Source: Amphiscolops sp. MND2022 (lineage: Eukaryota). Taken from it: a stretch of DNA of 64,000 bases. Positions 870-49,500 of the stretch are shown here, piece after piece. Within the stretch, counting starts at the first letter, position 1, and the number at the start of each line of letters is the position of its first letter. Made by a program: the position numbers and the translations under genes. Below the pieces are notes generated by a model, which saw only the letters and a program-made list of their open reading frames with translations, ran no database searches and had not been told where the DNA came from. The stretch spans positions 17,732,001 to 17,796,000 of the forward strand of contig OZ076410.1 in the NCBI GenBank assembly GCA_964187785.1, read 5' to 3'.

Positions 870-1200
870 AGTCAAGTAGTGGATTGAGATCGCGGAGATT
901 TGGCAGAATTTGGGAAAACCGCAGCACAGATTATGATTGATTTTCCTCCCCCATTATATATGGGCGGAAAATAATAATATCTTCCAACAGTTGTCTTTTT
1001 GCCAGCTTTTGTTTCACGAACCTTTGTTTGCAAGCTTTTGCAGCACGATAGGATACATTGAGTGTGTACATTGAGTGCGTTTGCTGATGGCGTTTGTGTA
1101 CGATCGTGTTGCGCGAGCATGTAGTAGTTAAAATGTTAATTTTTCAAACAGACGCATGTGTTTCGCGTTCTTGTTGGTTGTTGTCAAGTTTTCAAGTTAT
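870..1200. mobile_element. Dispersed repeat family A (hairpin core TTTTCCTCCCCAT..ATGGGCGGAAAA), probable non-autonomous Helitron-like element
   Basis: Similar segments at 4320-4721 (inverted), 5230-5690, 37130-37748, 42410-42880 and 56798-56905. Confidence 0.6.
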
Positions 1201-2103
1201 CAGAACAAATTAAAAGCTTATTAATGACTACCAGTGCCATCTGGTGTTTCGAAATATGTTCCTTCAACATTTGCCAATTGTGGTGCCTGTGAATTCAATT
1301 CATTTGAATCCTTTTGACTTTCGGCATTTACAGACATTCCAAAGATATGCAACTGGGAAATTCAACCACTTAAGTTATAAATGCGTCGATAAGTTTCTAA
1401 ATAGGCAATGGTGTGTAGACACACCACCGTTGCTAGGTCAGATTCGTATCGGATTTTTACCCGTACAATGTTTGGGAAGTTATACAGCGGATATCTAGGA
1501 TATCTGTCGATATAACCGATGTGGGGTTATATTGCACTAAGGGCGAGGAAAAACTCCCTCGAGATAGAAACAAGGGTATATAATATACTAAGTGGACCAA
1601 AAGATTGACACAGAAAGTGAAAGATTATCAGAAGTGATGATACGATAATGAAAAGTGAAAAATTTTGTGCATTCCGTTTTTTTGGTTCACCTAGTATTTG
1701 TCTAGACAAAGAGTCATATGCTCTCATGAAGTCTAGTGTTGCTTCATTTGATGATTAGTTTTTTACATTAACTTCTGTCGGTGATGTTACTCATCTCGAA
1801 AAGTTATAAACAAAAACAAGAAAAGCCAAGTATAAAGCGAAGTTCAAACGCATATCATGTTTACAATCAACGTATCACGAGCTCTTGAATGTTGCATTAC
1901 ATAATCTGAACCAAATTTAACAAATATGGTCATACTGACCACTCAGGTATCTATTTGTTTAGGAACGACCTAAATGGTCAACCTTAAACTTTGAAGACCA
2001 TTATTCTTATCCTAACCCATGTCCAATCTACGATATCTAGTCAAAACATCTGAATAATTATCATCGAGTTATCACTTGATTTCTTTATTAATCTCTCAGC
2101 ACG

Positions 2104-3648
2104 ATGTTAGCTAGTTCATTTGCTAAACGTCACCGAATTTGTATGACTCAGCTTTTTTATGGACGAATTATGAGAGGGATGACCACTAGAGTTGCTTCAA
2201 AAACAAATGTGACGACTCAAGGGGCCTTATACAATGAAAGTTGGTTCTCTGCTGCTAATTTGAAAGTATATGAAGTGACCTATCCTGTTCTTGATAAAGC
2301 ACTGGATTCTGTAACGAAACTTGAAGGCAACATTTTGTATTTTCAAGATCTAGGATGCAGTGCTGGTAGGAATGCTGTGGATTATGGACGTATTCTCATG
2401 CAAATGCTTCGAGCTAAGGGCGATATACGACCCGTCAGATATGTATTCAGTGATCTGCCTTCAAACGATTTTCCTTCTCTCATGAAACTTCTCTCCTCCG
2501 CTCCTCATTTACAACCAGACAAAAATGTATTTCCTTTTGCACAGGCACAAGATTTTTACGATCCATGCTCCCCAAAATCGTCTGTACATCTTTCTTTGTC
2601 TTTGATTACAATGCATTGGATTTCACAAATCCCAACTGCAACGGTTGATGAAGAGGATCTCCAGTTGCAGCCGTATTTATGTGCCAATGAGCCCGGTTGT
2701 CCTTCAATGATACGTTCCTTGTGGCAAAAGCATGCTCATCAAGATCTCAAGTTATTTTTGAGACTTCGAGCGCAAGAGCTGATGCCAGGTGGGGCCCCCC
2801 ACCATCAAATTTTTTCGTTGGAAAATTATTTCAAAAATTGTTTCAAACTGGCCAGATTAGAGGTAAAATCTTCTTCCGAAACTGGAAGTTAACTTCAATT
2901 GGAAAATTCTTTCGTTTGAACAAAACCTTTTTCACTCACTTTGACTGTGATTATGTTCGAATTATTTGTTTTTTTTTGTTGTGACTCAAAACAGAAAGCT
3001 GTTGATTGTCCTAGTCAAAAATGAGTAATAAAGAAAACTAGTGTGAAAAAAGTTGGTATTTGGATTCCAAACTGCAACCGTCGAATCGAAATTAAAATCA
3101 AGGCATTTTTGAGCGGTTTAAAGTCTTTTCAATTGAGGTATTTTCACTAATTTTTAAAATGAAAATTGGTGGTGGGGTTACAGAAAAGATCCCCAGGTGG
3201 ATATGGTATATACATGATGCCTGCAAATGGACCAGTGAAAGAATGGGTAGATGGAAATGACAAAGCACAGGGTAGTGTGTTTACCGCGGCAATGAAGCGA
3301 GCAGCGGGGAAAGGTCTTATTCCGAAAAAGGCGCTTATCAAGGCGATCACTACATACTACCTTCGCACTGAAGAAGAGGTGCAATTCGCTGCCAGAGAAG
3401 TGCCAGATCTGGAGGTAGTGAGTGTTAAGACAACGGTAGTGCCTCTGTGTGAAGGGTCGGGTCCACAACAGATGTGCAACCTAGCTTGGTCCATTAATCA
3501 AGCTTCTATTCAAACATCCGCAGGACTAACTGACGACCAAGCGGAGGCGGTGAAAGCAGAACTGAAAGATGTTCTCGAAGAAAGATTTGGACAAAATAAA
3601 GGCGCCAATATGCCTTATATCATGATATGTGTGAGGAAAAAGCCTTGA
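2104..3648 (+). CDS. SABATH-like SAM-dependent methyltransferase (Methyltransf_7 / PF03492-like), paralog 1; 2 exons (2104-2788, 3197-3648), 378 aa
   Basis: SABATH motifs are present in order: DLGCSAGRN, SDLPSNDF, QDFY, MHWIS, DLKLFLRLRAQELMPGG. A GT..AG phase-1 intron (2789-3196) joins ORF 2104 and ORF 3166 in frame as ...ELMP-GG-YGIYMM...; stop TGA at 3646-3648. Confidence 0.9.
2793..3192. mobile_element. TIR MITE forming the intron of paralog 1 (Introner-type), 8-bp TSD CCAGGTGG
   Basis: CCAGGTGG at 2785-2792 and 3193-3200. Right end AAAATTGGTGGTGGGGTTACAGAAAAGATCC is the inverse of the left end (partly deleted in this copy, complete in paralog 2). Confidence 0.75.
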
Positions 3649-3963
3649 TGCTTCTTGTCTTTAGTGCCACATGTACATTAGAGAAAAGGGTTTGAAGCTT
3701 GACTCGAAAACATGAATTGAATCACTGTTTATGGCACACAAGCTGTGACGCCACTAAGTGCTTTGAACTGACATATAGTATCAGACAAGTGCCATACTGC
3801 TGTTTTGTCTACTTGAACGATATTATATTCTATATATTGTTGTGTTAATCTAGTTGCATTTCAATAATTCATATTTGGAAGCCTTGATCGGTTTTATTTT
3901 TGTTGCGTTTGCTGTTTGTATTTCATTAATTTGGTTGTTGTACATGTTTACATTTACAAAAGG

Positions 3964-4093
3964 NNNNNNNNNNNNNNNNNNNNNNNNNNNNNNNNNNNNN
4001 NNNNNNNNNNNNNNNNNNNNNNNNNNNNNNNNNNNNNNNNNNNNNNNNNNNNNNNNNNNNNNNNNNNNNNNNNNNNNNNNNNNNNNNNNNNNN
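3964..4093. other. Assembly gap (N run)
   Basis: 130 N bases. Confidence 1.
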
Positions 4094-4319
4094 TAAAGTG
4101 TTAACAAATGTTACAAAAACCATTATCACACAATTTAAACTTCATAAAGTCTGAAAAGTATATTTTCCCTTTGAATATTGAAAACTTTTTTGAAACTCTT
4201 AGAAAAATATTTATCCGTATAAATGTACTACTCACTACGTTTTTCCAATAAGATTTGTGCACTTCACAAATTGAAATTTGATGCAACAACAAACAACAAC
4301 AAAAAAGAAGTCCTTTTAC

Positions 4320-4721
4320 ACTTGGGTTTGTTATTTTCCGACCCCATATTTTACAAATAGGGGAGGAAAATCATGATCTGTGTTGCGTTTTTTTCCAAAT
4401 TTTGCCAAAATTCCATTTTGTACTCCACTTCCTGCTCACTCTCCCTCCATAATACTCCACTTCCTGCTCACTCTCCCTACTCACTCTCCCCACTTACTCT
4501 CCCACCATAAAAGGTAAACTCAGCCGCCAACTCCGCAAGTAAAAATGGGAATAAGATCTAAAGGGAATAAGATCTAAAATTCCAGGACGGGAATAAGATC
4601 TAAAATCACTAAATTTTAGATCTTTTTCTTTAGATCCTATTCCCCTCCCAAAATAGCTATGGCTCAATTGGTGAAGGCGAAAAGGGAGGAAAATATCCCG
4701 GTGCTTAGCGGGCGTCTTGTA
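4320..4721 (+). mobile_element. Family A copy ending in a GC hairpin + CTTG (Helitron-like 3' end), with internal GGAATAAGATCTAAA repeats
   Basis: 34 bp identical to 37715-37748 (GGAAAATATCCCGGTGCTTAGCGGGCGTCTTGTA); GGAATAAGATCTAAA occurs three times near 4548-4605. Confidence 0.5.
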
Positions 4722-5869
4722 TGACAATTGTACCCTGTATATGCGAGACGATCTATTTACAACTAGTCCAGGAATTGTGAAATTACACCTAACAAAACAC
4801 ACATTGGGTTATGTTTGTTGAGGAGTGATATTTTGACTCCTACGGGTGTTCCTTTCCACAACATCTCCTTTAACAAATAAATCCAAACACGGCAAGTGTG
4901 TATTTTGATTATCAGGTCCAAAACTAGATTCATTATGAGCCTCCTAATCTCTTTGTTTATTCTCTACAAGGCACATGAAAAAGGTTTTTAAAATGATGTT
5001 TTAAAATTGTATAATCAAACTTTGGAGTGATCAATCGGAATTATCACAATGACATTAAGGTGGTTGTTTTAAATTCTTAGTCCACTGTTGCAACTCTGAT
5101 TAGATGATTCAGAGTCTACTAAACTCTCTTTAATGTATTTACCTGAGTTGCATTGATTAAAATGAGTTTTGAATTGAGTTTGCCGCGTTTTGCGGCCTCG
5201 TTCGACATCGGGGTTCCAGTGTAGTCCCACGAAGTTTCACGGATCTTGAAATTGCTGATAACTCAAAAATTCGTTTGTATCCTTCATAAGGTATAAACGA
5301 AAGTTTCAAAATCAAAATATTATTGTGTTTCTAGTCAAAATTCGAGTCATTGAGCTCTTGAGGCTATTTTTCCAACACATATTTGAGTACCACGCTGTTA
5401 GTTTTTCGACAGCGGAAACAGGAGGTTTCAACACTTATTCACTCTAGGGTATCTTCAAAGTGTAATCTGAATTGTTACCATTTGGAAACTCTTCAATCAA
5501 AATAATATCTTGCATCTGCTGTCTTTTTACAAGCTTTAGTTTTTGTTGACGTCACGTATATTACAATACATTGAGTGCGTTTGCTGATGGCGTTAGTGTA
5601 CGAACGTGTACTAGGTAAAAACGTATTTTTTTCAATCATAACATACAGACGCACGTCTTTCGCCTTCTTTGTTGTTTTCAATTTATCAACAAAATATTAA
5701 CTTTTTAGTCGGCGCCAATATTACAGTGACCAGTTTTTTGTTGGACAACTTTACTGGTAATTTTACATGATGCGTAATGGACAAGTTTTAAAGAACTATT
5801 AAACTACTGGACCGTCAACCAGAAACGCATATAAGTTAGTGGAAAGGGCCCCCTTTCATTTACTCCATT

Positions 5870-6112
5870 TTTAAAGTAAGATACAAAACCAGACGATGCT
5901 TTAGGGTGCCCTCTTCGAGTTTTTTCGGCACTGTGCGCCTTTTTTAATATATTTTTTTCTGTCTTCGAAGGGTTCCACTTTCAATTTTTCCATATTTTGC
6001 AACAAACTGCACTTTCAAAAATCCCAAAGATTCCCCTCTTTTACAATTTTATAAACTTTGCGCTTTTTGGACCTTAGATATAGCGCCGACTTTAGACGTT
6101 ACCGTCTTGTTT
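5870..6112 (+). mobile_element. Dispersed repeat family C (3' end ...CCTTAGATATGGCGCCGACTTGGGCCGTTCCCGGCTTG|TTT), Helitron/Helentron-like
   Basis: The same terminus occurs at 42153 (inverted), 50202 and 51001; an internal fragment lies at ~56140-56400. Confidence 0.6.
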
Positions 6113-7311: not shown

Positions 7312-9309
7312 AACAAAATTTGTATCGGTTGTATAACTGAACAGTGACTAGTTTCAACAAGTTGTGTCGGGACTTGAGGTCCCGGGTATTTATATATTCA
7401 TATCTGCATGACTAGCGATTTTATGGGTGTCATGTTCTAAAAATAGCCTTAAGGGCTTTCTAAAGTAGCACCGACTGTTTTCAGCACCAATGACGTCACA
7501 TTTATAAATCAACTTCAAAGCAATTGCTTGCCGACACAGGTGAATGATGAAATGAAGGCATCGATATTTGTGTGTCCTCAAGGACAAGCAGCTGTAGATG
7601 TAACTAAATTCAATATTTCATGTAGCTTTACATGTAACTGTATTTTACATGCGATATAGAGTATCTATATATTTCAACATAACACTCTTGATATTGAAGG
7701 CCTACTAGTACAGAGGATTGCTATTTAAAGTTGGCAAGCTATTCATTCAACAGCACCAATAGTTTAAATAGGGACTAAGTGTTCATTCACCGTGATTCAT
7801 TGATGACGTAAGGCAAGTAGCCTCGGTAGCCTTTAAAGTAAACACTTCAGTAAGAATAAATGAATACTGCAACGTGATTGGTCTAAATGAGTTTTGGACA
7901 GCGTGTCCACGGCGACACGTGAGGGAACATTTGAACACGTTTCCTTTGCCTGTCCGCCTTGGTGTCCAATTATTAAGAAAGCATCAATATTTTACATGTA
8001 TAAATATACTAAATCAACAACATATCAACTAGATAATACTAATTTGAGCCAAAATGGGTTCATTCCGACATTCGGTCCGACCATTAATTTTGTTTCCATT
8101 ATCAAACAAAATATTATCATCAACATTAATATGAAACAAAGCTGCAAGTTTTAGTTTCTAATTCTTGGGTTGGGCGTCGTCCCTCCGGTTAAGGGAAATT
8201 GTTTCCAGTAGGGCTCTAACCAAGAGGCATCGTACCAGAAAGAGTGTTAGAATAATTGTATGAGATGGAATACCAGTTCCCATCGTATGCGGCAGCCTGT
8301 GACATTACTAGATACTGAAGTACATAATGTGGTTATTGAAATGATAGTTATTTTTGTTATTTCAAATTGTCATCGCTAAAGTAAATTGTTTAACATGACA
8401 TTGATTTAAAAACCAAAACGACAAGAATTATTCACAAGGGTTTATAACAGCGTCGGTACGCTTCTACATAGAGATCAGGTTTCTGCCAGTACGAAGTTTC
8501 TTGGGATCTTCTATAGTGGATATTTGGATATATATCCGTAACCGATGTGGGTCCATTCCACAAAGGGCGAAGAAAAAACCCCTAGATGAAAACAAGGATT
8601 ATACTGTACTAGGCGAACCATAAAAAACGGAGCACATGAAAATTTTGCTCTCTTAAGGTTCAAATATTTGTCAAATATATACTTCAAGTGTGAACAAAGT
8701 TACTGCTACAGACGTCTAGACTTTTTCTGCGGGTTCGGGTCATTCTTCGTGAACAATTTGATTACGTATAGAGATGATGACTAATAGAGAAAGTGAAAGA
8801 TTGTCAAAAAAGTCTTGTTTCAAATAATACGATTTTGAATAGTGAAAGCTTTTTTGCGTTCTTATTATGGTTCACCTAGTAATATTAACTTAGACATAAA
8901 GTCATATATTCTCATTAAGTCTAATGTTGCCGATGTACCGCAAAATTGAGAAGACGCCAATTTTATATTAGCAACTGAGGTTGATGGTACTAATTTCAAA
9001 AAGTTAAATAGGAACAAGAAATGACTATAGTATAAAACAAACCAAAGTTCAAAATTAAATAATGTTTACAATCAGCTCAACAAAAACCCATGACAAAATC
9101 TGAACAAATTATGACATATATGGTCATAGTGACTACACAGGTGACAGGTGACAATTCACTCGAAAACAAGAAACGACCTGAATGGTAAACCATAAACTTT
9201 GAAAACCATCATTCCTATCCTAACCCATCTTCAATCAACGATATCAAAACATCTGAATAATCATCATCTACGGAGTATCACGTGATTTTTTCTAGATTAA
9301 TCTGTCTTC

Positions 9310-10746
9310 ATGATGTTAGCTCGCTCATTTACTGAGAGCCATCGAATTTGTACGATCCAGTTTTTTTCTGAACGAATTATTAGAGAGATGACCACTAGAG
9401 ATGCATCGAAAACAAATGTGATGCAAGGGGCTTTATACAATGCAAGTTCTGTCGGTCAATTGAAATCACATGAAGTGACCTTTCCTAGTCTTGATGAAGC
9501 ACTGGATTCTGTAACGAAACTTGAAGGCAATATTTTGGATATTCAAGATCTAGGATGCAGTGCCGGAAGTAACGCTGTAGAGTATGGCCGTATTCTCATG
9601 CAAATGCTTCGAGCCAAGGGCGATTTACGACCCGTCAGATATGTATTCAGCGATCTGCCTTCAAACGATTTTCCTTCTCTCATGAAACTTCTTTCCTCCG
9701 CTCCTCATTTACAACCAGACAAAAATGTATTTCCTTTTGCACAGGCACAAGATTTTTACGAACCATGCTCCCCAAAATCGTCTGTACATCTTTCTTTGTC
9801 TTTGATTACAATGCATTGGATGTCACAAATCCCAACTGCAACGGTTGATGAAGAGGATCTCCAGTTGCAGCCGTTTTTAAGTTCCAATGAGCCGGATTGT
9901 CCTTCAACAATACATTCCTTGTGGCAAAAGCATGCTCATCAAGATCTCAAGTTATTTTTGAGTCTCCGAGCACAAGAGCTGGTTCCAGGTGGGGCTCTTT
10001 TCTCTACCCCCACCATCAAATTTTTTCGATGGAAAGTTATTTCAAAAATTGTTCCAAAATGGCCGCATTAGAGGCAAAATCTTCCTCCGAAACAGGAAGT
10101 TAACTTCTATTGGAATAGTTTTTCACTCACGTTAACTGATTATGTTCGATTGAACTTTTTTGTGACTCAAAATAGGATCCCAAACTGCCATACTTGAATT
10201 GAATTTAAAATGAAAGGTTTTCAGCCTTTTTAATTTTAATATTTTCACTGATTTTTCAAAATGAGTTCCGGGGGACAGAAAAGAATCCCAGGTGGATATG
10301 GTATATACATTATGGTTGCCAATGGACCATTGAAAGAATGGATAGATGGAAATGACAAAGCACCCGGTAGTGTGTTTACCGCGGCAATGAAGCGAGCAGC
10401 GGGGAAAGGTCTTATTCCGAAAAAGGCGCTTATCAAGGCGATCACTACATACTACCTTCGCACTGAAGAAGAGGTGCAATTCGCTGCCAGAGAAGTGCCA
10501 GATCTGGAGGTAGTGAGTGTTAAGACAACGGTAGTGCCTCTGTGTGAAGGGTCGGGTCCACAACAGATGTGCAACCTAGCTTGGTCCATTAATCAAGCTT
10601 CTATTCAAACATCCGCAGGACTAACTGATGACGAAGCGGAGGCGGTGAAAGCAGAGTTGAAAGATGTCCTCGAAGAAAGATTTGGACAAACTAGAGGCGC
10701 CAATATGTCCTACATCATGATTTGTGTGAGGAAAAAGAAGCCCTAA
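9310..10746 (+). CDS. SABATH-like SAM-dependent methyltransferase, paralog 2; 2 exons (9310-9988, 10292-10746), 377 aa
   Basis: Same motifs (YNASSVGQ, DLGCSAGSN, SDLPSNDF, MHWMS, RAQELVPGG). Intron 9989-10291 lies at the identical position and phase; the spliced frame is open to TAA at 10744-10746. Confidence 0.9.
9993..10287. mobile_element. TIR MITE forming the intron of paralog 2 (same insertion event), 8-bp TSD CCAGGTGG
   Basis: CCAGGTGG at 9985-9992 and 10288-10295; left end GGCTCTTTTCTCTACCCCC versus right end GGGGGACAGAAAAGAATC. Confidence 0.75.
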
Positions 10747-12059
10747 TGTTTTTTGTCACTAGTGACACATGCACGTGAGAAAAAGGGTCTGAATTATGAA
10801 ATGTAAATTTCAGCTGAGTCCATCTTCATGGCACACAACTTTTGACGTCATTAAGTAATTTCAACTTGACAAATAGTGGCAAAAATGCCTACTTGTTCGA
10901 TTTTATATTTTATATTTTGTATAGATAAACTTGTTCCTTGTAATCCAATAATTCACTTTCGGAAATATTGATTAGTTTTATTTCTTTTACTGAGTAATGT
11001 AATGGTTTTAATAATTTCCAAGTAGATCGTTTTTTATCTATAATTTAGATGTTATACATGTATACAATTACATAAGGCCTCGCTTTTAACAGCCATGTCC
11101 CGGCCCTGGTTATTTCTGTCAGCAACAGAACTTGGCAGCATTGGCACAACTATGCATATACAGCAATAAGATCAACTGTGATTCGCTAATGAATTTGATT
11201 GAAATTACGCACACGAAGCGGAGAATAAAGTCAATAACTTTTCTCAAAAATTTGAATACTTTGTCGAACAGCCTCAAGACAAAAAAGTTATTATAACAAA
11301 AAAACGTATGATCCAAATCTTCTCTTGAAGTTGCTTGAAAGTCGTTTTCGTTACCAATTGTTTAGGAATAAACCAAAAAATTCAATAGGTCTCAAGTGGG
11401 GAGTGTTTGGAGGGTTGTTTTCACGCTTCACAAAATCGATGTTCCCCGAAATTAAACCAAGTTTGAACGTCAGTTGCGTAATGAGATGATCCTAAACCAG
11501 GCCAGAAAATACAGTTATCACAACCGCCACACTGTGTGTCAATAAACTGTAAGAGATGAGACTTGAGATAAGTCTGGTAGAGTTCTTTGTCATCGTTTCT
11601 CCTTTTTCGGCCACGTAAACACGACTCACACCGTTGACGAAAACTGCTCACCATATCATTACAATCAACTCACACCTATTAGTAGGATACTCTTTAGTTT
11701 CACGAGGTGTTTGTTGAAAATTCAGTGAGAAAAATCCCGCGCTTGAAGGCATTTTGCATCCAGTAACAAAAATGCATCATCCATTTCCAGTGCTTTTGAG
11801 TGCGTTTGAAGTTTCGTTTTTGCCCAAGTTTATGATGCGTTGAATTTATGATCTGAGGCATCAGGACGCGGTGCTCTCTTGCGGTACTTGATGACCATTT
11901 TTCTGAGTGTTCGGTTGATTGTAATGTGCGAAAATTTGAACCTTTTCATCCACATGAAGTCGGACGTCAATTCTATCTCAATTCCAAGTCCATTTCAATG
12001 CGAACCTCATTTTGCACTGATCACTTCTTATTGTGGCTTTCGCTGCCCACTTGACTTAC

Positions 12060-37129: not shown

Positions 37130-37748
37130 CAACCACCTGCCCCATTTATGCCTCCACTCCCCCATATAAATAAATGGAGGTAAATAATCTAATGTGAGCA
37201 TCATCAACAAAAGAACTCAGAAACCTGAAATTGTTTCAAAACGAACAGAAAATCAAATGGAATTTTCCTGAATACAAACTCATATTTAATATTGAATCAT
37301 GGAACAATGAATTCAATTGTTTTGATTTCAAAAATTTATTTAATTTGTGATCATGGTTAAGAAATATTCAAAATAATAAAAGTGTTAACTTTTTATGTGG
37401 GCGGAAAATAATAATCTAAAATATCAACGTTAACTTACGTTTAACAATTGAAATTTGTAAGTTAACTCATTTATTATTCTGAATATATCGTAGCCATGAT
37501 CACAAATTAAAATAATATTTGAAATCAAAACAAATTCAGTAAATGGGCGAGGAAAATCAAGATCTGTGACGCGTTTTTTTTTACAAATTCTGCCAAAACT
37601 CCTTTATCTCCACTCCATGGAGTGAAGTGAACTTCACTTATTGCTTTCCCAGCCAGTAGATCTTGGGTACGATCCTCTCCTTGGCCATCCTTTTTTTTGC
37701 AATAAGGGTGTTGCGGAAAATATCCCGGTGCTTAGCGGGCGTCTTGTA
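37130..37748 (+). mobile_element. Family A copy with an internal ~70-bp fold-back and a Helitron-like 3' hairpin
   Basis: Inverted repeat 37320-37389 / 37460-37530; the 3' 34 bp are identical to 4688-4721. Confidence 0.55.
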
Positions 37749-39028
37749 ACATTTATGGACGTTTACTAAAGAACACTCGACGTTAAAGTGTTTACTTTGA
37801 GGCCTAAGACCAGTGACCTCATTGTTGCATATTAATTACGTTTGCAAATTAGAATAGAATTGAACCGACCAATGTTAAGGCGCCATAGCATAGAGGATGC
37901 GCGCAAGCCCGGATACCGTCAATTGTTTTATAAATTTAAATATTGAGAAATATATTTTTCAATTACAATTCAATTTGTTATCTTGATTATTTGGTATATC
38001 ATATGATAAGATTATTGAACAAAGTTTATGATCATTTGTCAGTTTGTATGTTTCTTCGATACACCAATCTTTGTTTTTGTGGACATCTAATGCATTGAAT
38101 AAGAGACTGTTTGATTTCCCTCTTTTAAAACGAGCTGTTTTCCCGAAATCTTTGAGTCAAACTCCTTTCTTCAAATTACTTTATGTACTGTTGAATTGTG
38201 AATCACTATTTCTCGTGTACTTTTGGGTCCTGCTTCGGTATGACACACAAAAAAGATACTAAACAGCACTGGTTATCGTGAGTGAAAGAATAACAAGATA
38301 AGCCATAAAATTGCCAAACTAGTTTTTAACTTGAGGCATCAATTGTTTCAGTTTTTCTGGTTCTAAGTACTTCTTTTGTTTGATTTTTTTGAAGCAAATG
38401 TTCTTCCGGTGAGTATGCAGTCTACTTTTTTGAATTCTATTTTCGTAAATATTCAAATTGAAAAGGAAATCAAAAGGAGTTTTACTGAAAACAAAATAAA
38501 ATTTATTATTACTCGTGAAATTATGAATTAAACCAATTTTTTTTTACAAAGAGACAGTGAAATATACGTATGTACGTTTGAACTGCATGTACGTATGATC
38601 AGTCACCAATTTAGTGAAATGAATGTCTAATTTCGGTCCCTGTCGTGGGCACTTTCATTAGCACTGTACTAACTATGTACCACTTATGTAAGAAGATTGA
38701 CTGATTTATTCTGTGTATGCAAAACAAACAGTGTAATTATAAATCGACCTGTGTAGTTATCAGAACAACCCGTAATTACGAGAACCACGTGTAATTATGA
38801 GATGCAGAGTGTAGGTAGTCAAATTGCGTGGAATCCAAGTTTGGTGTAAACTAGTCAATTACTGTAATTTGCGCGGGGTTAAACTGGTCAATTTACGAAG
38901 CTCGGTCAAATCGTGTAATGACTTATCAATGCGTGTAACGTGTGACAAATGTAAATCTTCCAAAAAAGTATTCCCACCCTGACTGAACAAAAATTGAACA
39001 AGCAGGATCCTGCTAGTTCGTTATCGGG

Positions 39029-39298
39029 ATGTGTCTCGTAATGCAGGTGGACTTGATTGTTGCGGTCTGTGTGACTTACCACTCGGAGCCCTTGGAACGT
39101 TACAAACGTTTTGTCGTCCGCGAGGAAAAACTATTATATGCAAGGTACTTGAAAGAGTTAGTTTCAAAGGTTTCAGATGATCAATGTAACAGACTGTTGG
39201 CGGAACTATCCTTTGCAGCAGAACACAGATCGACGATTATTACCCTGCTGGAACTTCTGCAAACGCAAAGTAAACCTGGTCTAATGGTGATGTTCTAA
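39029..39298 (+). CDS. 89-aa helical-looking ORF of unknown function
   Basis: EPLERYKRFVVREEKLLYARYLKELVSKVSDDQCNRLLAELSF; no family recognised. Confidence 0.2.
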   Translation: MCLVMQVDLIVAVCVTYHSEPLERYKRFVVREEKLLYARYLKELVSKVSDDQCNRLLAELSFAAEHRSTIITLLELLQTQSKPGLMVMF

Positions 39299-39857
39299 AT
39301 TTGTTCATGGCTGGATTCATAGCAGCCGACGACAATTTCACGTCGCCTTGATAACCAACAGGAGACAATGAAATTGTTCGAATTTATGCGAGTTTTTGAT
39401 CCACGAAACGACTAGTTTTATCTTGGATTTTGACCGATTATGCTGTACTGGATTACAGGAAGGAGTTGTTTGCGGTTGTCGTCGTAAACCGATTCTACCC
39501 AGCTGAAAGTAGTACCATTTTTTCCATTCAAGAGAGACGCTCATTCTTCTTTTTTTTGACAGCTTCTTGTAAAATTCGTTGTGCTTGGGATAAAGTATCA
39601 GCAGAATCACACGCAGCAAAATGGCTAATTATTGATAAAATAATCTTATCTATCGTTTTAAAACAGTCGACAGAATATCGACTTTCAGTTTATTAGAAAG
39701 ATAGGTAATCTAGAAATATCAATCGTACGATTAGCGTTCGATAGATTGTTCATTGCCAACCCCTGGTTCTGCCTGCAGCGTGTACTACCTTAAATTGAAA
39801 TGGTAATAACCTATCAACCCAACGGGTTAATCTTGATGAGTTTTATTTGCACAAAAT

Positions 39858-40216
39858 ACGAATAGAGATACTCATGACTGGTATCAAAATTGCAGCATGT
39901 CATCAAATACTGGCCGATTGTGATGATCTGGCAGTTTGTCTAAAACTGGTAATAAACTTTGAAAATAACGAATATTTGTGTAATACAATATTCATTTTGC
40001 ATAATCATTATTGAAAGTCAGAAGAACTTGAATTAAATCAATTTTATGTCAATGAAAATTATTTCGATTGAAACGAAAAATCCCAATGTACGAATAGAGA
40101 TACTCATGACTTGTACCAAAATTGCAGCATGTCATCAAATGATGGCAGATTGTGATGATCTGGCAGTTTGTTCAAAACTGTAATAAACTTTGAAAAATAC
40201 GAATAATTGTGTAATA
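39858..40216 (+). repeat. Direct repeat of ~128 bp (39858-39985 and ~40089-40216)
   Basis: TACGAATAGAGATACTCATGACT..GTGATGATCTGGCAGTTTG..AATAAACTTTGAAAA occurs twice. Confidence 0.85.
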
Positions 40217-40599
40217 TTGGTGTGTTTGTCTGAATCATTTTGAGTTAATATACGAAAAGTAGTGCATAATATTATGTTTGTTCAGTCTTCCACTTGAAAT
40301 TTATTCAAGAAGAGATGCCGCGTATCGCGTCAAGCATAAAGTCGTGAAATCCAGGAAATTTATGATTTCTGCAATCTGATGGGTTCGTTTTGCAAAACTT
40401 ACGTTTTGTGGAATCCGGGACAAAGCGGCATGCCGACAGTGCGTACAGCTAAGCATTTGTTACTGGAATCCACGACAAAATCCGTGGAATCAGCGACTTA
40501 TGACGTAATTTGCCAATTTGGCACGGTTAAAGGTATGGTCGTGGAATCCGAGGTATTCAGCACAAAATTACGCTGTGAGCAAATTTAGCTTGCCTATAT

Positions 40600-41895
40600 A
40601 CTCTAATGGTATTTTTCCCTCAGCGGCCGGTGTCGAAGGCTCATTCAGCTATTTCAAACAAATCAAGTCCCCACAGAGATTTGCTTGACTAGCAATCTAC
40701 TCAGAGATTTTGCTTCATGTTACTGTAATCCGAATTTGCTCTAATTCAAAATTTCGGAGAATGTTGTTTTTCGATTCGGCAGGACAGGGCAGATATTGGA
40801 CCATAGAGCAACTAAATTTGGCCTATACTGCAGCAGAGATAACCAGGGTCTTGTCATGTCTCTTTCTCTCTCGTATCATCCGAAGGTTATCACAGTACAG
40901 TGGCTCCAGTTCAATATTGAACAAATCCGCTAAACTGTTGAGTGCGCTTGCTAGTTCGTCAAGTCTGATTGGCTGTTCATTAGAATAAATCTTTTTGTCA
41001 TTACAACTTTCAACGAAGCATTCTAATTTTAAAGTCTTCTAATTTCAAAATTGCCTCATACAGAGACGAACTTCCTGGGAGATAAGGTACAAATCTTCGC
41101 TGCCCATCAAATTGGCGAGGATGCAATCCTTCAGGGCTGTCAATTGGTGAACAAGGACGCTACAACATGGTCCAGTATAAGGAGGTCCTATAAAAAGGAA
41201 GATTGATATTTGTTCTTCGAGGTGGACCCCAAAACACTAAATTTACGGAAGAGATGAAACATGTTCTTGAGGATACCGTCTCGACAAAATGCACTTCAAG
41301 CCTCTGTGAGAAAAACATCAAATTCCCAATTAAACTGCCAAATGCGTCAAAATCGAAAATCGCAATTACTCTTGAAGGATTATTCTTTACCTTTAAATAT
41401 CTATCATTGTCCATTTCGCACAAAACAGTCAAATTGTTAACGATGCACGACGTGATTTGCTAATTGGTTTCTAGGAAACGGTACTTCCTGTCCAACTCCA
41501 GTTTTTGTCGACGAAACTGGCTTTGATGTTTGATGTAACTACCAAGCGAGAAAAGACCCTATCGAAAACGGAACACCGGCAAAAATTGTAGCCAGTGGAC
41601 AAAGGGGGCCAAACATTACACTGATATTAGCAATACCGCCGAAATTGAAAGTTGTTCATTATCAAATTCATGATGGTGATGTCAATGCTGCAATTTTCTC
41701 AGCATTTCTTGTAGCCTTGAGTAAAAGTAGCCTTGGGTAATCTATTGGAAAGGGAAAGGGTTGTAACTTTTTGACCCGTCTTTGTAACTTGTCGACTGCT
41801 TCATCAACAGGTTCATGATTGACGCATCCTAAAGTACACGACATTTCGAGACCCTGAAACGTTCGAAGATCAACTTGCATTAAATCTGATTTCAA
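40600..41895 (-). pseudogene. Decayed long ORF(s), unknown family
   Basis: Protein-like minus-strand frames (..QSQFRRQKLELDRKYRFLE..VIAIFDFDAFGSLIGNLMFF..) with sparse stops. Confidence 0.3.
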
Positions 41896-42152
41896 TCAGT
41901 GCTGTATGAGTACCTTTGCTTACATTAATTAGTTCAGTAGTTACGAAGCGCGCCATAATGTGAAAATGGAAATCTGGGAAAGTTTGACAGGTACTAGATG
42001 TCAACTGTTGAATAGACTAGAAAGCATTTTCGTCTGGCAACACCTGAGTTCAATCGATGAAACTCCCAGTACGAGAGTATGATAGAGAGCAAAGGTTAGT
42101 TGCCAAATGAATCAGAGCAAGCAAATAACGTAAAAAGTAAATTAGTTTCAAA

Positions 42153-42390
42153 CAAGCCGGGAACGGCCCAAGTCGGCGCCATATCTAAGGCTCAAAAATA
42201 GCAAAAGGATTTCAAAGTGTCAAGTATTCTCTTCTACAGTACCCGCGTGAGTACCCGCGTGCTTTGAAAAATAGCAAAAGGATTTCAAAGTGTCAAGTAT
42301 ACTCTTCTACAGTACCCGTGTGAGTACCCGCGTGCTTTGAAAAATAGCAAAAGGATTTCAAAGTGTCAAGTATACTCTTCTACAGTACCC
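42153..42390 (-). mobile_element. Family C terminus with an internal ~67-bp tandem triplication, inserted into a family B MITE end
   Basis: AAACAAGCCGGGAACGGCCCAAGTCGGCGCCATATCTAAGGCTC; AAAATAGCAAAAGGATTTCAAAGTGTCAAGTA..CTACAGTACCC occurs three times. Confidence 0.7.
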
Positions 42391-43425
42391 AGTATAGCCA
42401 AGTAACTCTAAGTGAGGTGAAACTGCGAGATTTGGCAAAATTTGGAAAAAAACGCAACACAGATCATGATTTTCCTCCCCCATTTATGTGGGCGGAAAAT
42501 AACAAATGTTATGCTAACAAGTGTTTCTAGTCACAATTCGAGTCACTATGCTCCTCTGGCTGTCTTTTCAAACGCATATTTGAAAAAATAATTGTTTTTT
42601 CGATCGACAACATAACGAAGTACTTTTAACAATTTTGAACTCTAAGGAATCTCCAAAACAAAATGCGAAGATTTGGAAACGTATCGATCAAAATAATTTT
42701 TACAAGCTTTCGTTCTTGATGACGTAACTTATATTACAATACATTTAGTGCGTTTGCTGATGGCGTTTGCGTACAATGTTGTTGGTCGAGCATGTACTAG
42801 TTAAAAACGTAATTTTTCAATCATACCAAAAGCCGCACGTGTTTCGCATTTTTGCTTGTTGTTGGTTGCTTCTCTAAAACAAGCTCTGGAATCTCCTGGA
42901 TGAATTACAGATACCTATAGTTATAACATACCATTTATAACCTATCCTTCCAAATAGATGGAAGTAGCCGAAGCATTCTTCATTCAGCAACTTGTTTTTG
43001 ACAAAAATTAGTGACAGTGAAAAGGTTAGCTTGAATGTTCGTCGTATTTATTCGATCAGATAATGAGCTTTTATATAAACCTTTCTTTTAAAAATTATGA
43101 AACTTTTCATGTCATCTGAACAAATTTAAAACCATATTTATTAGGAATTTAGTGCTGAAATTTCCTGACATGTTGCATCAGTAAGTTCATTTATTGGACA
43201 TTCAACTACTGCAGTTTTTGGTCGATATTCGAAGAAATTATCGCTATAATTGTATTTGGTAGTTCATAAGGATGCAAATAATCACACTTGTTGTTCAGTA
43301 GAGAAGAAACATACTTTTATTACCCCGTTTGAGTTGATTCACCAAAAACAAAAATCTTGCTGTGTAAAACAAAGAATGAAAAAGTTTTAATCGAATAAAT
43401 ACTGTTTCGGGAAGAATCTGCAGCG

Positions 43426-43548
43426 ATGCCGAAAAAAGGCGGGAAAAAGGGAGGCAAGAAAGGAAAGAAGGGCAAAGGAAAGAAGAAAAGTGGGGACGAA
43501 ATTGAGATCCGGGAACCTCCGGGGGAAGCAGTCCAGAGGCTACTCAAG
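43426..43548 (+). CDS. LRR gene exon 1 (MPKKGGKKGGKKGKKGKGKKK..QRLLK)
   Basis: ATG followed by a basic tract; the donor is uncertain (GC at 43549, or GT at 43531). Confidence 0.7.
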
Positions 43549-46500
43549 GCACAGTTCCGACATCATTCAAAACATGAAAAACAAGCATCACTCATTTGTT
43601 GATTTGTTGAAAAAGTAGTGAACCTAGTTGAAAAAAATACACATTTTTGCAAAATTCTTGAAAATAATTTTGTAAGATAATGTAAGGAAATTACTGTAAC
43701 AATATTCTTGTAAGATTTGCAAATCCCAGCTGAAAATGGTACAAAAATGAAATGATTTTACAAACTCATACAAAATTGCATCGTTCGATCAGAGGAAACT
43801 GGAAAAAATAGATCAAATCGTTAGGTTTTGAATAGTTTCGACTAAATTTAAAGGGGAATGATTATTAAGTAGAATGGACCCTAACCGACAATTTTTTTCG
43901 GAACCGAAGTAGAAAATTAGGTGAACCGAAAGAGTTCTACCAAACAAAAGACTGAAAACGCCAACTATCTTTCTCATTTAGCCGTGCTTAATAACTAAAT
44001 CTGAAATTTTGAACAAATCAGGGAGTTTATCCATGTAAATTGCACAAAAGTAGATGTAAATAACAGTAAAATTGTAAAAATCAAAATCTTAGTCTTTGTT
44101 CAACTGCTTGAACAAAAAGGCCATTTTTCCCGCTTTTTCAACTCCAAGAGAGCTGCGTAGCGTTCCATATGTCAAGCCTAGGGTTGAAAAGTAGCGCTCG
44201 AGTCCTGCACTTGAGGCTACGGCTGTGACAATAGAGCAGGCGATTTGAACCAACTTCACAATTTCCGTATTGCAAGCCTTGCATTTCCCTTTTTTAACAC
44301 CATTAACAGTAACAGAAAGAAATTTATCCCACACCGGCTTTTTCGCTGGAGGCATTTCAGTGATCTGAAAAAATACAATAACACCGAATGATGAAAATCC
44401 AAAAAAACTGTTAAAATCGGATGTTAATTTCAAAACATTCATGTAAATAACATGTAAATTAAAGGCTTGTTAATAACACTATGTAAATAACATGACAGCC
44501 CTGATTACTGCCATCACTGCATTACCATGGTCACGGAAAAAGTAGACTCGTGAAAAAGTAGTATCGTGCAGGTTTTGACATCGCTAATTGTTTTTTGCTA
44601 ATCGCTAAACCGCTAGTTTTAAAATCGCTATTTTGCTGAAAAACGTTTTCTGAAAACTGTTAACGCTGAAACCATTAAATGTTTGACTCCAAGTATATTT
44701 TACAATTAAATGATAACTTAATTCAGTTTTTGCAAGAAAAAGCTGGAATTTTTATACAGTGTGGGTTTTACAAGTGTGAATGTTGAATAGTTTCGTAGTT
44801 CGTTTTGAATCACCGTCTGTGCCTGAGCAAATTTTGAATTCAGTAGATTAGTGAGAGTTATTTGAGCATAAAACTGGCCAAAAAACATGTGGATAACCCG
44901 GTCAAAAATTGGAAAAACGGAAAAAAGTCCCAAATCTGCTCAAAATTAGCTATTTGTAACTTTCTCAATTTTTGTCCCAGAGAAATTTAAAAAACACTAA
45001 TATAAACTAGACAAAATTCTAAGAAACTTTTATTTCTGATGTTTTTCAAAATTCTCAACAGATTTTGAGAAAATTGAGCCTGAAATTGCCCCGGGGGACG
45101 TTTTCTTAATCACAGTACTGTATTTGTTGCCGCTATATGAATTGCTGATAAAAGCGCTGAAAAGATACTGCTAGCAGCTAATTAGCGGCGTCAAAACTCT
45201 GCTATCATGTTTTTGTTGAGTTTATGTGTTGGTTGGAACTGTGACTGAATTGGACCTGCAGGCGTACGAGGGGATAGGAAAGGAGGAACACAGACGCCCC
45301 TGTGGTGACTTGAGGAAGCTGATGCGTCACCACGTCGAGAATGAGGTTCTCCTTACAAGGGTGAGTCAATTGAGACAGAATATTCAATCTTATTCAGTCT
45401 CAGAAGAGACAAAAAGTTATTTTTATTGAATATAAACACAAAAGGAAGTTTGTTTCAAAAGAATACCTAAAAAGAGGGGAATGGGCACAACTGCTTTTCC
45501 AGTCCCCATCCTTGGGGACCAGCTTTGGCACAAATGGAAAGAAGCTAGTCAAAAATGAGCGAGACAAAAAAAAACGGATCTGTTTCACAATGTCCCCCCC
45601 CCCCCGAGTTGGGATCCCAGGGCAGCCCATCCATGGGCCATCGATGGACCATCGCATTCCCATCGATGGCCCATCGATGGTCCGCCGACCTTTTTGCCAT
45701 GGCCCATTGATGGCCCATCGATGGGCCATCGATGTGAGATGGGACTATTCTGAGCTCCCATCGATGGGCTATCGCAATTTTTGCCAGGGTATAAAAAACA
45801 CCTTTCTAAGGGACTTCTATGAAAAACATTGGAAATAAATAAATTACATTACAGTATAAGTTCAAGAGAATGCTCAGAATGTAAGAAATGCATCAGGAAT
45901 CGACTGACGGATTCCCAAATACAATTCATAACAAACAGTAGCATCTCGAAATCCTTACTTGGAAAATTTGTAACAAAAAAATAACAAACCTTCGATGCAA
46001 ATGACATCCTTAAAACGGAACACCTATATTTCTGAAAAAGTGAAGTACGATTGAAACAAAATGAAACCAAAAGGTCTGAATTATGCAAAAATTTGACTTT
46101 CAAAGTACAATAATCTGATCAAAAATACGGTAGTTTTTCACAGCAAACTAAAAAAACTGGCAAAACTTCAAAAATACACATCAAAATACGACGAAGTAGA
46201 GGAGCTTTAATTGCTGGGAGAACCATCTGCTTGTAAGAAAATAAAAGATCTGAAATATGCAAAAATGTGACCTTCAAAATACAGAAATCTGATCAAAAAT
46301 ACGTTTTTTTTTCACAGCAAAATAAAAAAACCTGGCAAAACTGCAAAAATACGCATCAAAATCCGACGGAGTAGAGGAGCTTTAATTGCTGGGAAAACTA
46401 TCTGCTTGTAAGAAAATAAAAGAGCTGAAAAATGCAAAAATTTGGTTTTCAAAATACAATAATCTGATAACAAATACGGTTTTTTTTCACAGCAAAATAA

Positions 46501-49500
46501 AAAAACCTGGCAAAACTGCAAAAATGCGCATCAAAATCCGACGGAGTAGAGGATCTTCCATTGCGGGTAGAACCATCTGCTTGTTAGAGAATAAAAGATC
46601 TGAAATATGCAAAAATTTGACCTTCAAAATACAGAAATCTGATCAAAAATACGGTTTTTTTCACAGCAAAATAAAAAAACCTGGCTAAACTGCAAAAATA
46701 CGCATCAAAATCCGACGGAGTAGAGGATCTTTAATTGCTGGGAGAACCATCTTCTTGTAAAAAAATAAAAGATCTGAAATATGCAAAAATTTGACCTTCA
46801 GGAAACGCTGTGCCGAAAAGCGTCCTTAATGCTACCCGGTCATTAAGGTAACCCAGACAACCAAAAAATATGAAAGAGACACGATTATAGAAAATCAACC
46901 AAGCTGCCGCCGCAATTCCAATTTTTCATACATGTCAGTTTTTCTCCCCCATCGATGGACCATCAATGGCCCATCGATGAGCCGTCCATGGGAAAACTTT
47001 TTTGGATCCAAACTATACCCATGGATGGCCCATGGGTGGACCATGCATGGCCATGCATGGGAGTCCATGGGATCTCATTACGGGCCCCATATATCACTCG
47101 TTACACTACCCAGGTTTTCGATCTTTGCGAATCTGTGCAGATCTGCAGAATTTTTCTGCAGGGTTCTGCATAGATCGTTGCACTGAATCTTGAAGATCCA
47201 TACAGATCTGCAGGATCTTTACATAAGTGTGCAGATTTTCTTTAAAGATTTCTGCAGAATTGTTTTTCTGCAGCTTCTAAGGAACCAATATACTGCATTT
47301 TTGGACTTCTTTAAGTACTTTATCAAGTATTTTAGCTGACCAAGGTTCAGTCAGTTGATACTCTCGATCGCTCGAAATTCTCGAGAAAGAAATTTTGTCC
47401 CCATCACGGTAATTTTGGTGAATGGAGAATGCGCCGTATTGGTTGTACACCGTAATTTATCCATTTCACTTGAACTTTCCAGAAGTGATTGTTGAACTTT
47501 GAGAGGCTCGTTTGCCATATTGACTTCCTTTTGACGGATGAAATTTGACATGTGGCAACCTTCTGGGTTGGTAGATGTGTTGATAAAATGTTGTTGTAAC
47601 AGGTCGGGAACATGGTTTGTTGGAGTAATTTTAGTAATTTGTGGTGACTCGGAATACGTTATAGTAATTTATTGGCCATTGTTTGGATCTGTAAAAAGCA
47701 CCATATTGAATATGCATAGACAAAAGATGAATGTCGGAACGGTTTTCAGGTCCCATCGAAAAGATTGTAAAGATCACATTTAATGAAATTTTTCATTTTA
47801 AGGAATATTTGATGAACCCAATGTATACCAACCAACTTGAAGCCTGTCGACACTACATCGAACGAGCTTTATTACGAACTATTTTAGTAACTCCTTTTTA
47901 TAGAAGAGCCATCACCCTCTAAGAGAACCAAATTCATAAATTTGCATGCAATTCCGAACATAAAACCATTTGGTACCATGTAATTCCATGTTTGGAAACG
48001 CCATAAAATGATCGTTGTTATTCCCTGAAAACGGAATTCTATGTTGCGTTGGGTCTGGGCAAACTCATAGCCAAAAATAGCCCTGCCTGCCCAACACAGT
48101 TTGGCATTTGAATTATTATCGAATGACGTCATCAAAGGGTCTTCTCAAGCACATATGCTTCTGCTAAGTCCAATTTATCTTTTTTTTTGAGTTTTTCCCT
48201 TTAAACAGTTCAAATCTCGCTAAAATATTAAACGATAGTTCAATAATTCAGAACCAAATTAATGCAACCCTATGACATGTATAATTGTATTTTAGTTTGT
48301 AGTTCACCCCACAACCATTAAAGTGCCAAAGAAAGCGGCGGCAGATTTTGTGATGCCAGAAGAAGTCAATCTTGAGATGCTTATCCAGTCATTCTACAAA
48401 GCCTATTACTCTTACGTCAGAGATATCATCTGCTGGGACTTGCCACTAGAATTCATCGAGTTCGCCAAACTGGTAAGCAAGCTAGGACACCGGTCGTTCC
48501 CGAAAATTAAGCATAATTCAAACAAACCCCACACATAGAGAAATCAAAATTCAAGTTTGAACTAGCGCTTCAATTTTCAAGATATTGAAATGACGTGGTC
48601 CAAAGGAACTTTCAAAGAGCGACGATATTCATTGTTCTCAAATATATGCATTTTTTGATCCTTAAGGAAGGGGCGTCAACTTAAACCGTTCCTAATTTGT
48701 TTTTTTTTTCGAATTTACGATGAGTTTATTTGTTTTTCGAAGGAATATGCATTCATTTGTTCCCGTCGTGTACAGACAAAAGCGCCCTAGACAAAGTGCC
48801 CCAGTAAAAAGTGCCACGCTAATTTCCGAGCTAATTCCCCGCTTTTAATTAAAACTAATTGGAGTAAATAATAATTCACTTGTAATGCCAGGTTTGAAAA
48901 TTTCACACATTACTTATCCCAATTGAGAACGAATCAAGCAGCTAATTTTGGCAATTTTGAAAAATTATATTATTTTTTTATTTAAACAAACTGATAATTA
49001 TTTAATTGGAGTGAATTTAGTGAAAAAAGAGCAGCAAATTCTCTGTACACTGATACTGCAGTTCTTAAGAAATTAATACATTTTGTTCAGAAATGACAAA
49101 ATTAGCAGTTTAAGTCGTTTTCAATTGGGATTTGTAAGAGGCGAAAGTTTCAAGCCGGGCATTACCAGTGAAAGTCATCCAAAAGCATTCACGTCAAAGC
49201 ATCCAAAATACACATTCAAAAGCACCCAAAATACATGTATACTCTGCCTTTGATTGGGGCGCTTTTGACTGTGTAATTTGGGTACTTTTTATCGGGGCGC
49301 TTTTGTCTGGTAACCGTTCGCGTACCTCGAGTTGATATTTCTGTGGTGTTTAGTGCCTATTGATTGAGAAGAGAGACAGATTCAAATATATCCGGATGCT
49401 GGAGGTCTGGAACTGTGGACTCTCTCCCAAGTGTGCCCTTCGTCTGTCGGAAACCCTCTCCCTCTCAAGACTCACGAGTCTTACTCTTGATGACAACGAG

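Follow-up and report, generated by a model that had tools for sequence, protein, structure and literature searches.

Does the only intron in each of two tandem methyltransferase genes descend from a transposon, and did the duplication of the transposon's target site supply both of its splice sites? The origin of new spliceosomal introns in animals is an old problem, and transposon-made introns are well documented in algae and protists. We examined the two genes in a 64-kb stretch of DNA (here called the window) and followed their inserts through the whole assembly of 1.07 Gb. A MITE-made, Introner-like intron is the best explanation that we can offer and is very probably correct, although both the splicing and the membership of the Merlin superfamily remain inferences.

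Two tandem genes with inserts bracketed by an 8-bp duplication

The 64-kb window contains four copies of the 8-mer CCAGGTGG and no more (2785-2792, 3193-3200, 9985-9992 and 10288-10295), and each pair of copies flanks one insert that lies within one of the two tandem methyltransferase genes. The features of the two genes are as follows.

1612..3899, + strand: tandem duplication unit 1, consisting of the gene, ~490 bp upstream and ~250 bp downstream (self-BLAST of the window)
2104..2788, + strand: exon 1 of methyltransferase paralog 1 (SABATH / Methyltransf_7), ending ...CCAG (Pfam PF03492, E = 1.4e-22; open frame, spliced translation)
2785..2792, + strand: left 8-bp target-site duplication CCAGGTGG of paralog 1, with the predicted GT donor at 2789-2790
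2793..3192, + strand: MITE copy of paralog 1, 400 bp, with the left terminal repeat short by ~12 nt and the right end reading ...ACAGAAAAGATCC
3193..3200, + strand: right duplication copy CCAGGTGG of paralog 1, with the predicted AG acceptor at 3195-3196
3197..3648, + strand: exon 2 of paralog 1, including the stop codon (spliced translation; dN/dS between paralogs)
9310..9988, + strand: exon 1 of methyltransferase paralog 2 (Pfam PF03492, E = 1.5e-24; translation)
9985..9992, + strand: left duplication copy CCAGGTGG of paralog 2
9993..10287, + strand: MITE copy of paralog 2, 295 bp, with an internal deletion and an intact left terminal repeat GGCTCTTTTCTCT
10288..10295, + strand: right duplication copy CCAGGTGG of paralog 2
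10292..10746, + strand: exon 2 of paralog 2, including the stop codon (translation)

In the self-BLAST of the window, tandem unit 1612-3899 matched 8788-10983 at 80-82% identity. Exon 1 of the two paralogs scored 80.8 and 87.2 bits against Pfam PF03492, for which the cut-off is 29.8 bits; exon 2 alone gave no Pfam match. In both window paralogs, CCAG/GT...AG/GTGG (slashes mark the predicted splice sites) is the sole GT-AG solution within the CCAGGTGG repeats. Joining 2788 to 3197 in paralog 1 yields an open frame of 378 aa (2104-2788 + 3197-3648), and joining 9988 to 10292 in paralog 2 yields one of 377 aa (9310-9988 + 10292-10746). When either gene is read without splicing, stop codons are met inside the insert. 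The predicted splicing would remove the element together with one duplication and restore ...CCA GGT GGA... (Pro-Gly-Gly). Apart from the element, the predicted intron of both genes contains only the two halves of the element's duplication and no other nucleotide. The 19-mer GGATCTTTTCTGTAACCCC matched the window only at the two insert ends (2 matches versus 0.01 expected). The CCAGGTGG-bracketed pattern is far beyond chance.

An earlier note, made from the sequence alone, had claimed that CCAGGTGG brackets the sole intron of both paralogs, that the GT lies in the left copy and the AG in the right copy with Pro-Gly-Gly restored, and that the left end of the paralog 2 insert matches the right end of the paralog 1 insert as an inverted repeat at 26 of 31 nt. 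The bracketing is exact, and it extends to a third paralog; the inverted-repeat match was confirmed as well. The geometry of the splice sites also held, and the splicing itself is only inferred.

The third paralog came from a protein search of the genome, which returned exactly three methyltransferase paralogs, two on contig C2 and one on contig C3. The C3 gene carries the same CCAGGTGG pair and the same element with both ends intact, and in addition a nested insertion of ~550 bp. Because all three paralogs share the insert, the insertion of the element predates both gene duplications; the earlier note's claim that insertion came before gene duplication is thereby upheld. The third paralog is located at L034:2165-3124 (C3 ~68.103 Mb) and its intron measures ~967 bp. 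Within the nested ~550-bp piece, whose borders read ...GGAGTC... and ...GACTCC..., there are internal repeats of ~200 bp.

Some further observations concern the gene family and the window. The genes belong to a family of SABATH type (Methyltransf_7), here in an animal genome; the nearest relatives (41-45% identity) come from metagenome and marine-protist transcriptome (MMETSP) sources. Horizontal acquisition of the family is conceivable; the host is apparently an acoel of the photosymbiotic type. Elsewhere in the window, an ORF fragment at 14061-14546 matches reverse transcriptase (RVT_1, E = 2e-11) and is a retroelement remnant, and the repeats common to 900-6050 and 37500-50900 point to other interspersed repeats. 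A run of N, either an assembly gap or a mask, occupies 3964-4093, ~300 bp downstream of paralog 1.

The insert is a copy of a high-copy MITE family

When the 1.07-Gb assembly was searched with the 416-bp insert stretch as a DNA query, 3,228 first-look candidates appeared; 42 of these were scored, showed 73-80% identity and were distributed over many chromosomes. The MITE copy of paralog 1 was 74-80% identical to more than 40 scored copies genome-wide and 23% divergent from the family consensus. Alignment of 30 copies revealed sharp family boundaries, the two ends reading GGCTCTTTTCTGT... and ...ACAGAAAAGA(A/G)CC. Many copies are flanked by perfect 8-bp direct repeats of unrelated sequence, for example GGTTTGCC, CCTGTCGC, CATAAGTT, CAAGGTTC and GTAGGTAG. 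A stricter scan of the fetched loci yielded 28 complete copies in which the two duplication copies differ at no more than one of the 8 positions. The consensus, built from 23 copies, is ~408 bp long; its terminal 21 nt are identical in inverted orientation and a partial match continues to ~36 nt.

The abundance of the family was also evident from counts of its ends. The terminal 13-mer GGCTCTTTTCTGT occurs 4,325 times in the genome versus 49 times for the reversed control, often as +/- pairs ~400 bp apart, and the 11-mer GGYTCTTTTCT occurs 11,664 times versus 3,359 times for its control. In contigs of public short-read DNA runs, the depth inside the element was ~3,000x that of the flanks. Copies of 300-430 bp had no evident coding capacity, an impression formed without an ORF scan. 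The insert family is a high-copy MITE of ~410 bp: it is short, it has terminal inverted repeats, and it is flanked by duplications that vary in sequence and are fixed at 8 bp. The check proposed in the earlier note, a search for other TIR-bearing copies with 8-bp TSDs, thus turned up thousands of copies.

Divergence from the sample consensus separates the copies into two age classes, a younger one of ~6-14% and an older one of ~19-26%. The methyltransferase copies belong to the older class.

Superfamily of the element

Merlin elements are recognized by a terminal 5'-GG, a target duplication of 8-9 bp and terminal repeats of more than 20 bp (PMC8101967). The ends of the present family, with their terminal GG and 8-bp duplication, meet these structural criteria. 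The genome also contains at least 42 matches to PF12762 (DDE_Tnp_IS1595), several of them in open frames of 310-327 aa that may be intact. We consider a Merlin-like assignment plausible. It is an argument by analogy, resting on structural hallmarks only, and the Merlin-like label given by the earlier note goes no further than that: Merlin transposases are present in the genome and no parent element has been linked to the MITE. The Merlin/IS1595-type transposase matches, for example those at C4:73095498, C12:20560775 and C9:50348630, are candidate parents.

The usual hAT terminus is (C/T)A(G/A)NG. The family ends read GGCTC... and not (C/T)A(G/A)NG; membership of hAT is not met. A 1,691-bp copy, L071, which contains a BED finger and a hAT dimerisation domain, was considered as a parent and rejected, as its coding part is nested: it is a separate hAT element delimited by CAGGGGCTGG terminal repeats and a GTCTAAAG duplication of its own. 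This hAT-type element, nested in the MITE, occupies L071:1150-2430 (C2 ~36.36 Mb) with repeats CAGGGGCTGGCAATT... and duplication GTCTAAAG, and its ORFs encode a BED-like zinc finger together with a C-terminal dimerisation motif of hAT type.

The exon downstream of the insert is under purifying selection

A first alternative to an intron is that the MITE merely broke the genes, leaving three pseudogenes or three copies that encode truncated proteins of 250-260 aa; the presence of AG/GT in the duplication would then be coincidental. In support of this view, there are no transcripts, the public gene calls contain only unspliced products of 226-262 aa, and the context of the acceptor is weak. Public run searches returned no RNA runs for the methyltransferase locus or for the ODAD3-like locus described below, only four runs from one DNA sample. 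The spliced methyltransferase protein is absent from the protein databases, in which we found only unspliced read-through ORFs of 226-262 aa. The 3' end of the intron is purine-rich (ACAGAAAAGAxCC), and two AGs further upstream, at -13 and -8, are potential competitors of the predicted acceptor.

Against disruption, each of the three paralogs keeps an open exon of 150 codons after the insert, conserved by selection: dN/dS among the three was 0.27-0.31 for this exon, compared with 0.24-0.45 overall. The insert itself evolves neutrally. Its divergence among the three paralogs (0.20-0.27 substitutions per site) is near dS (0.14-0.26), and it has undergone large indels, comprising a loss of 12 nt in one terminal repeat, a deletion of ~105 bp and the nested insertion of ~550 bp. 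All six copies of the 8-bp duplication are unchanged across the three paralogs. Furthermore, the spliced protein aligns with the intronless homologs P0004 and P0005 without a gap over the junction, which falls at a conserved EL.PGG.G motif. P0004, the nearest homolog (45% identity), comes from a 1.6-kb run contig of undetermined type, in which its ORF is contiguous; P0005, the second nearest (41% identity), is encoded by a contiguous 369-codon ORF on a metagenomic DNA contig. Four other genes have the same geometry, with the ORF always on the AGGT strand (see below). Taken with the selection data, this leaves disruption a very improbable explanation.

The downstream exon has stayed in frame and under constraint since the insertion, and we therefore infer that the insert is precisely removed from the mRNA. 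The inference comes from selection, in the absence of transcripts. That removal occurs by splicing at the duplication is likely on the same grounds, namely selection and the continuity of the ORF.

Other genes split by the family

The 8-bp duplication can hold an AGGT at five offsets, and a genome search covering all five gave 115 family ends preceded by this tetramer. About 40 of these AGGT-flanked ends were examined, and 16 independent complete copies were identified among them. Five of the 16 interrupt long ORFs, in each case on the strand that has AGGT in the duplication. Given the strand, the background frequency of at least 66 open codons on both sides was 1.8% (window and control loci), and the excess is significant (P ~6e-6; P ~1e-4 without the index case). 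Most of the sampled copies are outside ORFs. The five split genes are listed here, with the open codons on either side of the element.

Methyltransferase: index case; duplication CCAGGTGG
ODAD3-like gene (L050): 437+125 codons; duplication AAAGGTAG
PAN/C-type-lectin gene (L075): 212+66 codons; duplication CAGGTATT
Single-copy C2H2 zinc-finger gene (L076): 118+227 codons; duplication CAGGTTTG
Unknown ORF (L058): 104+81 codons; duplication AGGTTGTC

In the PAN/C-type-lectin gene, the match to the Lectin_C profile ends at position 43 of 107, precisely where exon 1 ends. Four of the five ORF-splitting copies are in the older age class, yet their duplications are perfect. Three further copies (L062, L068 and L071) were not counted as introns; they had 30-59 open codons on one side, and two of them were in the opposite orientation. 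The orientation of the element relative to the gene was the same in all five ORF-splitting copies. This agreement would arise by chance about once in 16, and a real bias is no more than a possibility that the data suggest. An element-borne branch point as the cause of such a bias was not supported, CTRAY being present in only three of the six intron copies examined.

A survey of Introners (Gozashti et al. 2022) set the minimum at four introns that resemble one another and lie in unrelated genes. Here the family splits five unrelated ORFs, their intron status being inferred without annotation or RNA. The earlier note's description of the insert as Introner-type gained support from at least four other unrelated ORFs split by the family, one of which has empty-site orthologs.

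AGGT-preceded ends were fewer than base composition predicts, with 115 observed and ~200 expected among the 11,664 end matches, and a target preference for AG/GT was rejected on these counts. The family has no preference for AGGT and so is not directed to protosplice sites. The intron cases probably represent insertions into exons that were spared by selection, the AG/GT having been present in the duplication by chance.

The same survey of copies bears on a second alternative, that the insert is removed in a non-standard way, either by splicing that depends on TIR pairing, as in the MITEs of tunicates and euglenids, or by precise excision of DNA, with the AG/GT being incidental. Two points favor it. 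Predicted folds pair the ends of the introns: the 5' 45 nt pair with the 3' 60 nt of each intron, with 14-33 of the 45 positions paired. Non-canonical MITE introns are, moreover, known in Fritillaria (PMC11282704). On the other side, every ORF-splitting copy that we found has a usable GT and AG, with the reservation that the copies were selected for AGGT. In an unselected sample of non-AGGT copies, none of 11 lay in an ORF at the 66-codon threshold; one, L006, was borderline (64/76 open codons). The left repeat of paralog 1 is short by 12 nt, and the gene is still under constraint. Non-standard removal is therefore most unlikely in our judgement, and we retain splicing at the canonical sites. 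Pairing of the terminal repeats might bring these sites together and mask the upstream AGs; this is conceivable as an inference, and paralog 1 lacks part of one repeat.

Empty sites in related genes

The ODAD3-like protein is 50-51% identical to outer dynein arm-docking complex subunit 3-like proteins of Symsagittifera roscoffensis and Convolutriloba macropyga, and 81% identical to a 558-aa protein of another assembly. These identities put the source organism of the window within or close to the acoels. All three of these other acoel assemblies encode the protein in a single uninterrupted ORF. In the closest relative, the ODAD3 DNA aligns to a single AAAGGTAC site and continues colinearly, and the protein alignment is free of gaps at the junction. 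Four DNA runs were examined at L050; their unitigs confirmed both exon/MITE junctions and contained no empty allele.

The PAN/C-type-lectin gene has more than 100 paralogs with uninterrupted frames (310-377 aa). Only the L075 gene and three tandem neighbors on C3 (84-86% identity) end at the junction, and it is likely that the insertion came first and the tandem duplication followed. Single-exon PAN + C-type-lectin genes are greatly expanded in this genome, with 644 first-look candidates and no fewer than 150 scored matches; they lie at C3:1.786-1.855 Mb and at more than 150 other places; many of the tandem clusters are on C1, C7, C11 and C13.

Recent gain, as judged from an ortholog or paralog without the intron, is established for the ODAD3-like and PAN/lectin genes. 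For the methyltransferase there are only distant intronless homologs. No close empty-site ortholog of it was found by word-indexed, exhaustive or P0004-query searches: the word-indexed protein search returned only unspliced ORFs of the same species, and in the exhaustive search the nearest non-self matches were at 45% and 41% identity. The earlier note had held that the gene was ancestrally intronless and had proposed examining orthologs for an intron at ELxP/GG. P0004 and P0005 are gap-free there, but they are distant, and the claim rests on homologs of 41-45% identity without a close ortholog.

These data also address a third alternative, in which an older intron was already present and the MITE landed in it. 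MITEs commonly sit in introns, and 32,110 TEs were counted in introns of Praesagittifera naikaiensis (PMC6451197). Against an older intron, nothing but the element and the halves of its own duplication is found between the exons, the nearest homologs are intronless at this position, and the ODAD3 site is uninterrupted exon in three species. We regard an older intron as very unlikely, and a newly made intron as the reading to be preferred.

A proposed course of events

In the explanation that we propose, a non-autonomous MITE of ~410 bp (TIR GGCTCTTTTCTGT..., 8-bp TSD) would have inserted at CCAG/GTGG in a single-exon SABATH-type gene. The duplication would have left the insert flanked by a GT on its 5' side and by an AG on its 3' side, such that the spliceosome could remove the element plus one duplication and the original mRNA would be restored. 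The insertion would then have been tolerated and become a fixed intron, and two duplications of the gene would have followed, a tandem one on C2 and one to C3. The family, without a target preference, would have done likewise in at least four other unrelated genes, the survivors being those with AG/GT in the duplication. The element family, its TIRs and duplications, the insertion shared by three paralogs, the ODAD3 empty sites and the purifying selection downstream are direct findings in this scheme.

Because the family has no target preference, intron birth appears here as a by-product of ordinary transposition filtered by selection. A single MITE family provides a datable series in an early-branching bilaterian lineage, from empty site through exon insertion and fixed intron to duplication, and the five loci are directly testable by experiment.

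A bolder reading is that introns are being gained, now or recently, throughout this genome by several MITE families, of which the Merlin-like family is one. We lean slightly against this reading on the present evidence. If it is true, Acoela would be a further animal lineage with Introners and a tractable system for the study of intron birth. Many genes of the host are single-exon, and the 3' ends of the new introns are purine-rich and lack a normal polypyrimidine tract. If the reading is true, the choice of 3' splice sites would be unusually permissive or would be helped by pairing of the terminal repeats.

Comparison with known systems

The family resembles the Merlin superfamily (IS1595-related) in its 5'-GG, its 8-bp duplication and its repeats of more than 20 bp, in a genome that has DDE_Tnp_IS1595 matches; it differs in that the link is structural only, with no autonomous copy bearing GGCTCTTTTCTGT ends. 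With hAT MITEs it shares the 8-bp duplication, but its ends do not fit the hAT terminus.

In the literature that we searched, we found no report of Introners in acoels; the sole paper containing both words was a survey of Copia retrotransposons. The genome paper on Praesagittifera naikaiensis found no introns consisting only of TEs (PMC6451197). Introners are known from Micromonas, Aureococcus, dinoflagellates and others (Gozashti et al. 2022, PMC9860276), and the survey of 3,325 genomes in that study detected them in only two animal groups. The present case is like Introners in that a short non-autonomous transposon with TIRs and TSDs makes whole introns in unrelated genes. It differs in the animal host, in the small minority of thousands of copies that are introns, in the lack of an AGGT preference, and in that intron status is inferred without transcripts. 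The specialisation of Introners for genes or protosplice targets is not met here. A parallel in geometry is the Florenciella Introner (PMC9860276, Fig. 2E), in which likewise both splice sites are recruited from the insertion site and the length of the mRNA is unchanged.

In Fritillaria borealis (PMC11282704), also an animal, insertions of MITEs with TIRs and TSDs became introns as well. The junctions there are non-canonical and require a permissive spliceosome, whereas in the present family a canonical GT-AG pair is offered in the duplication itself.
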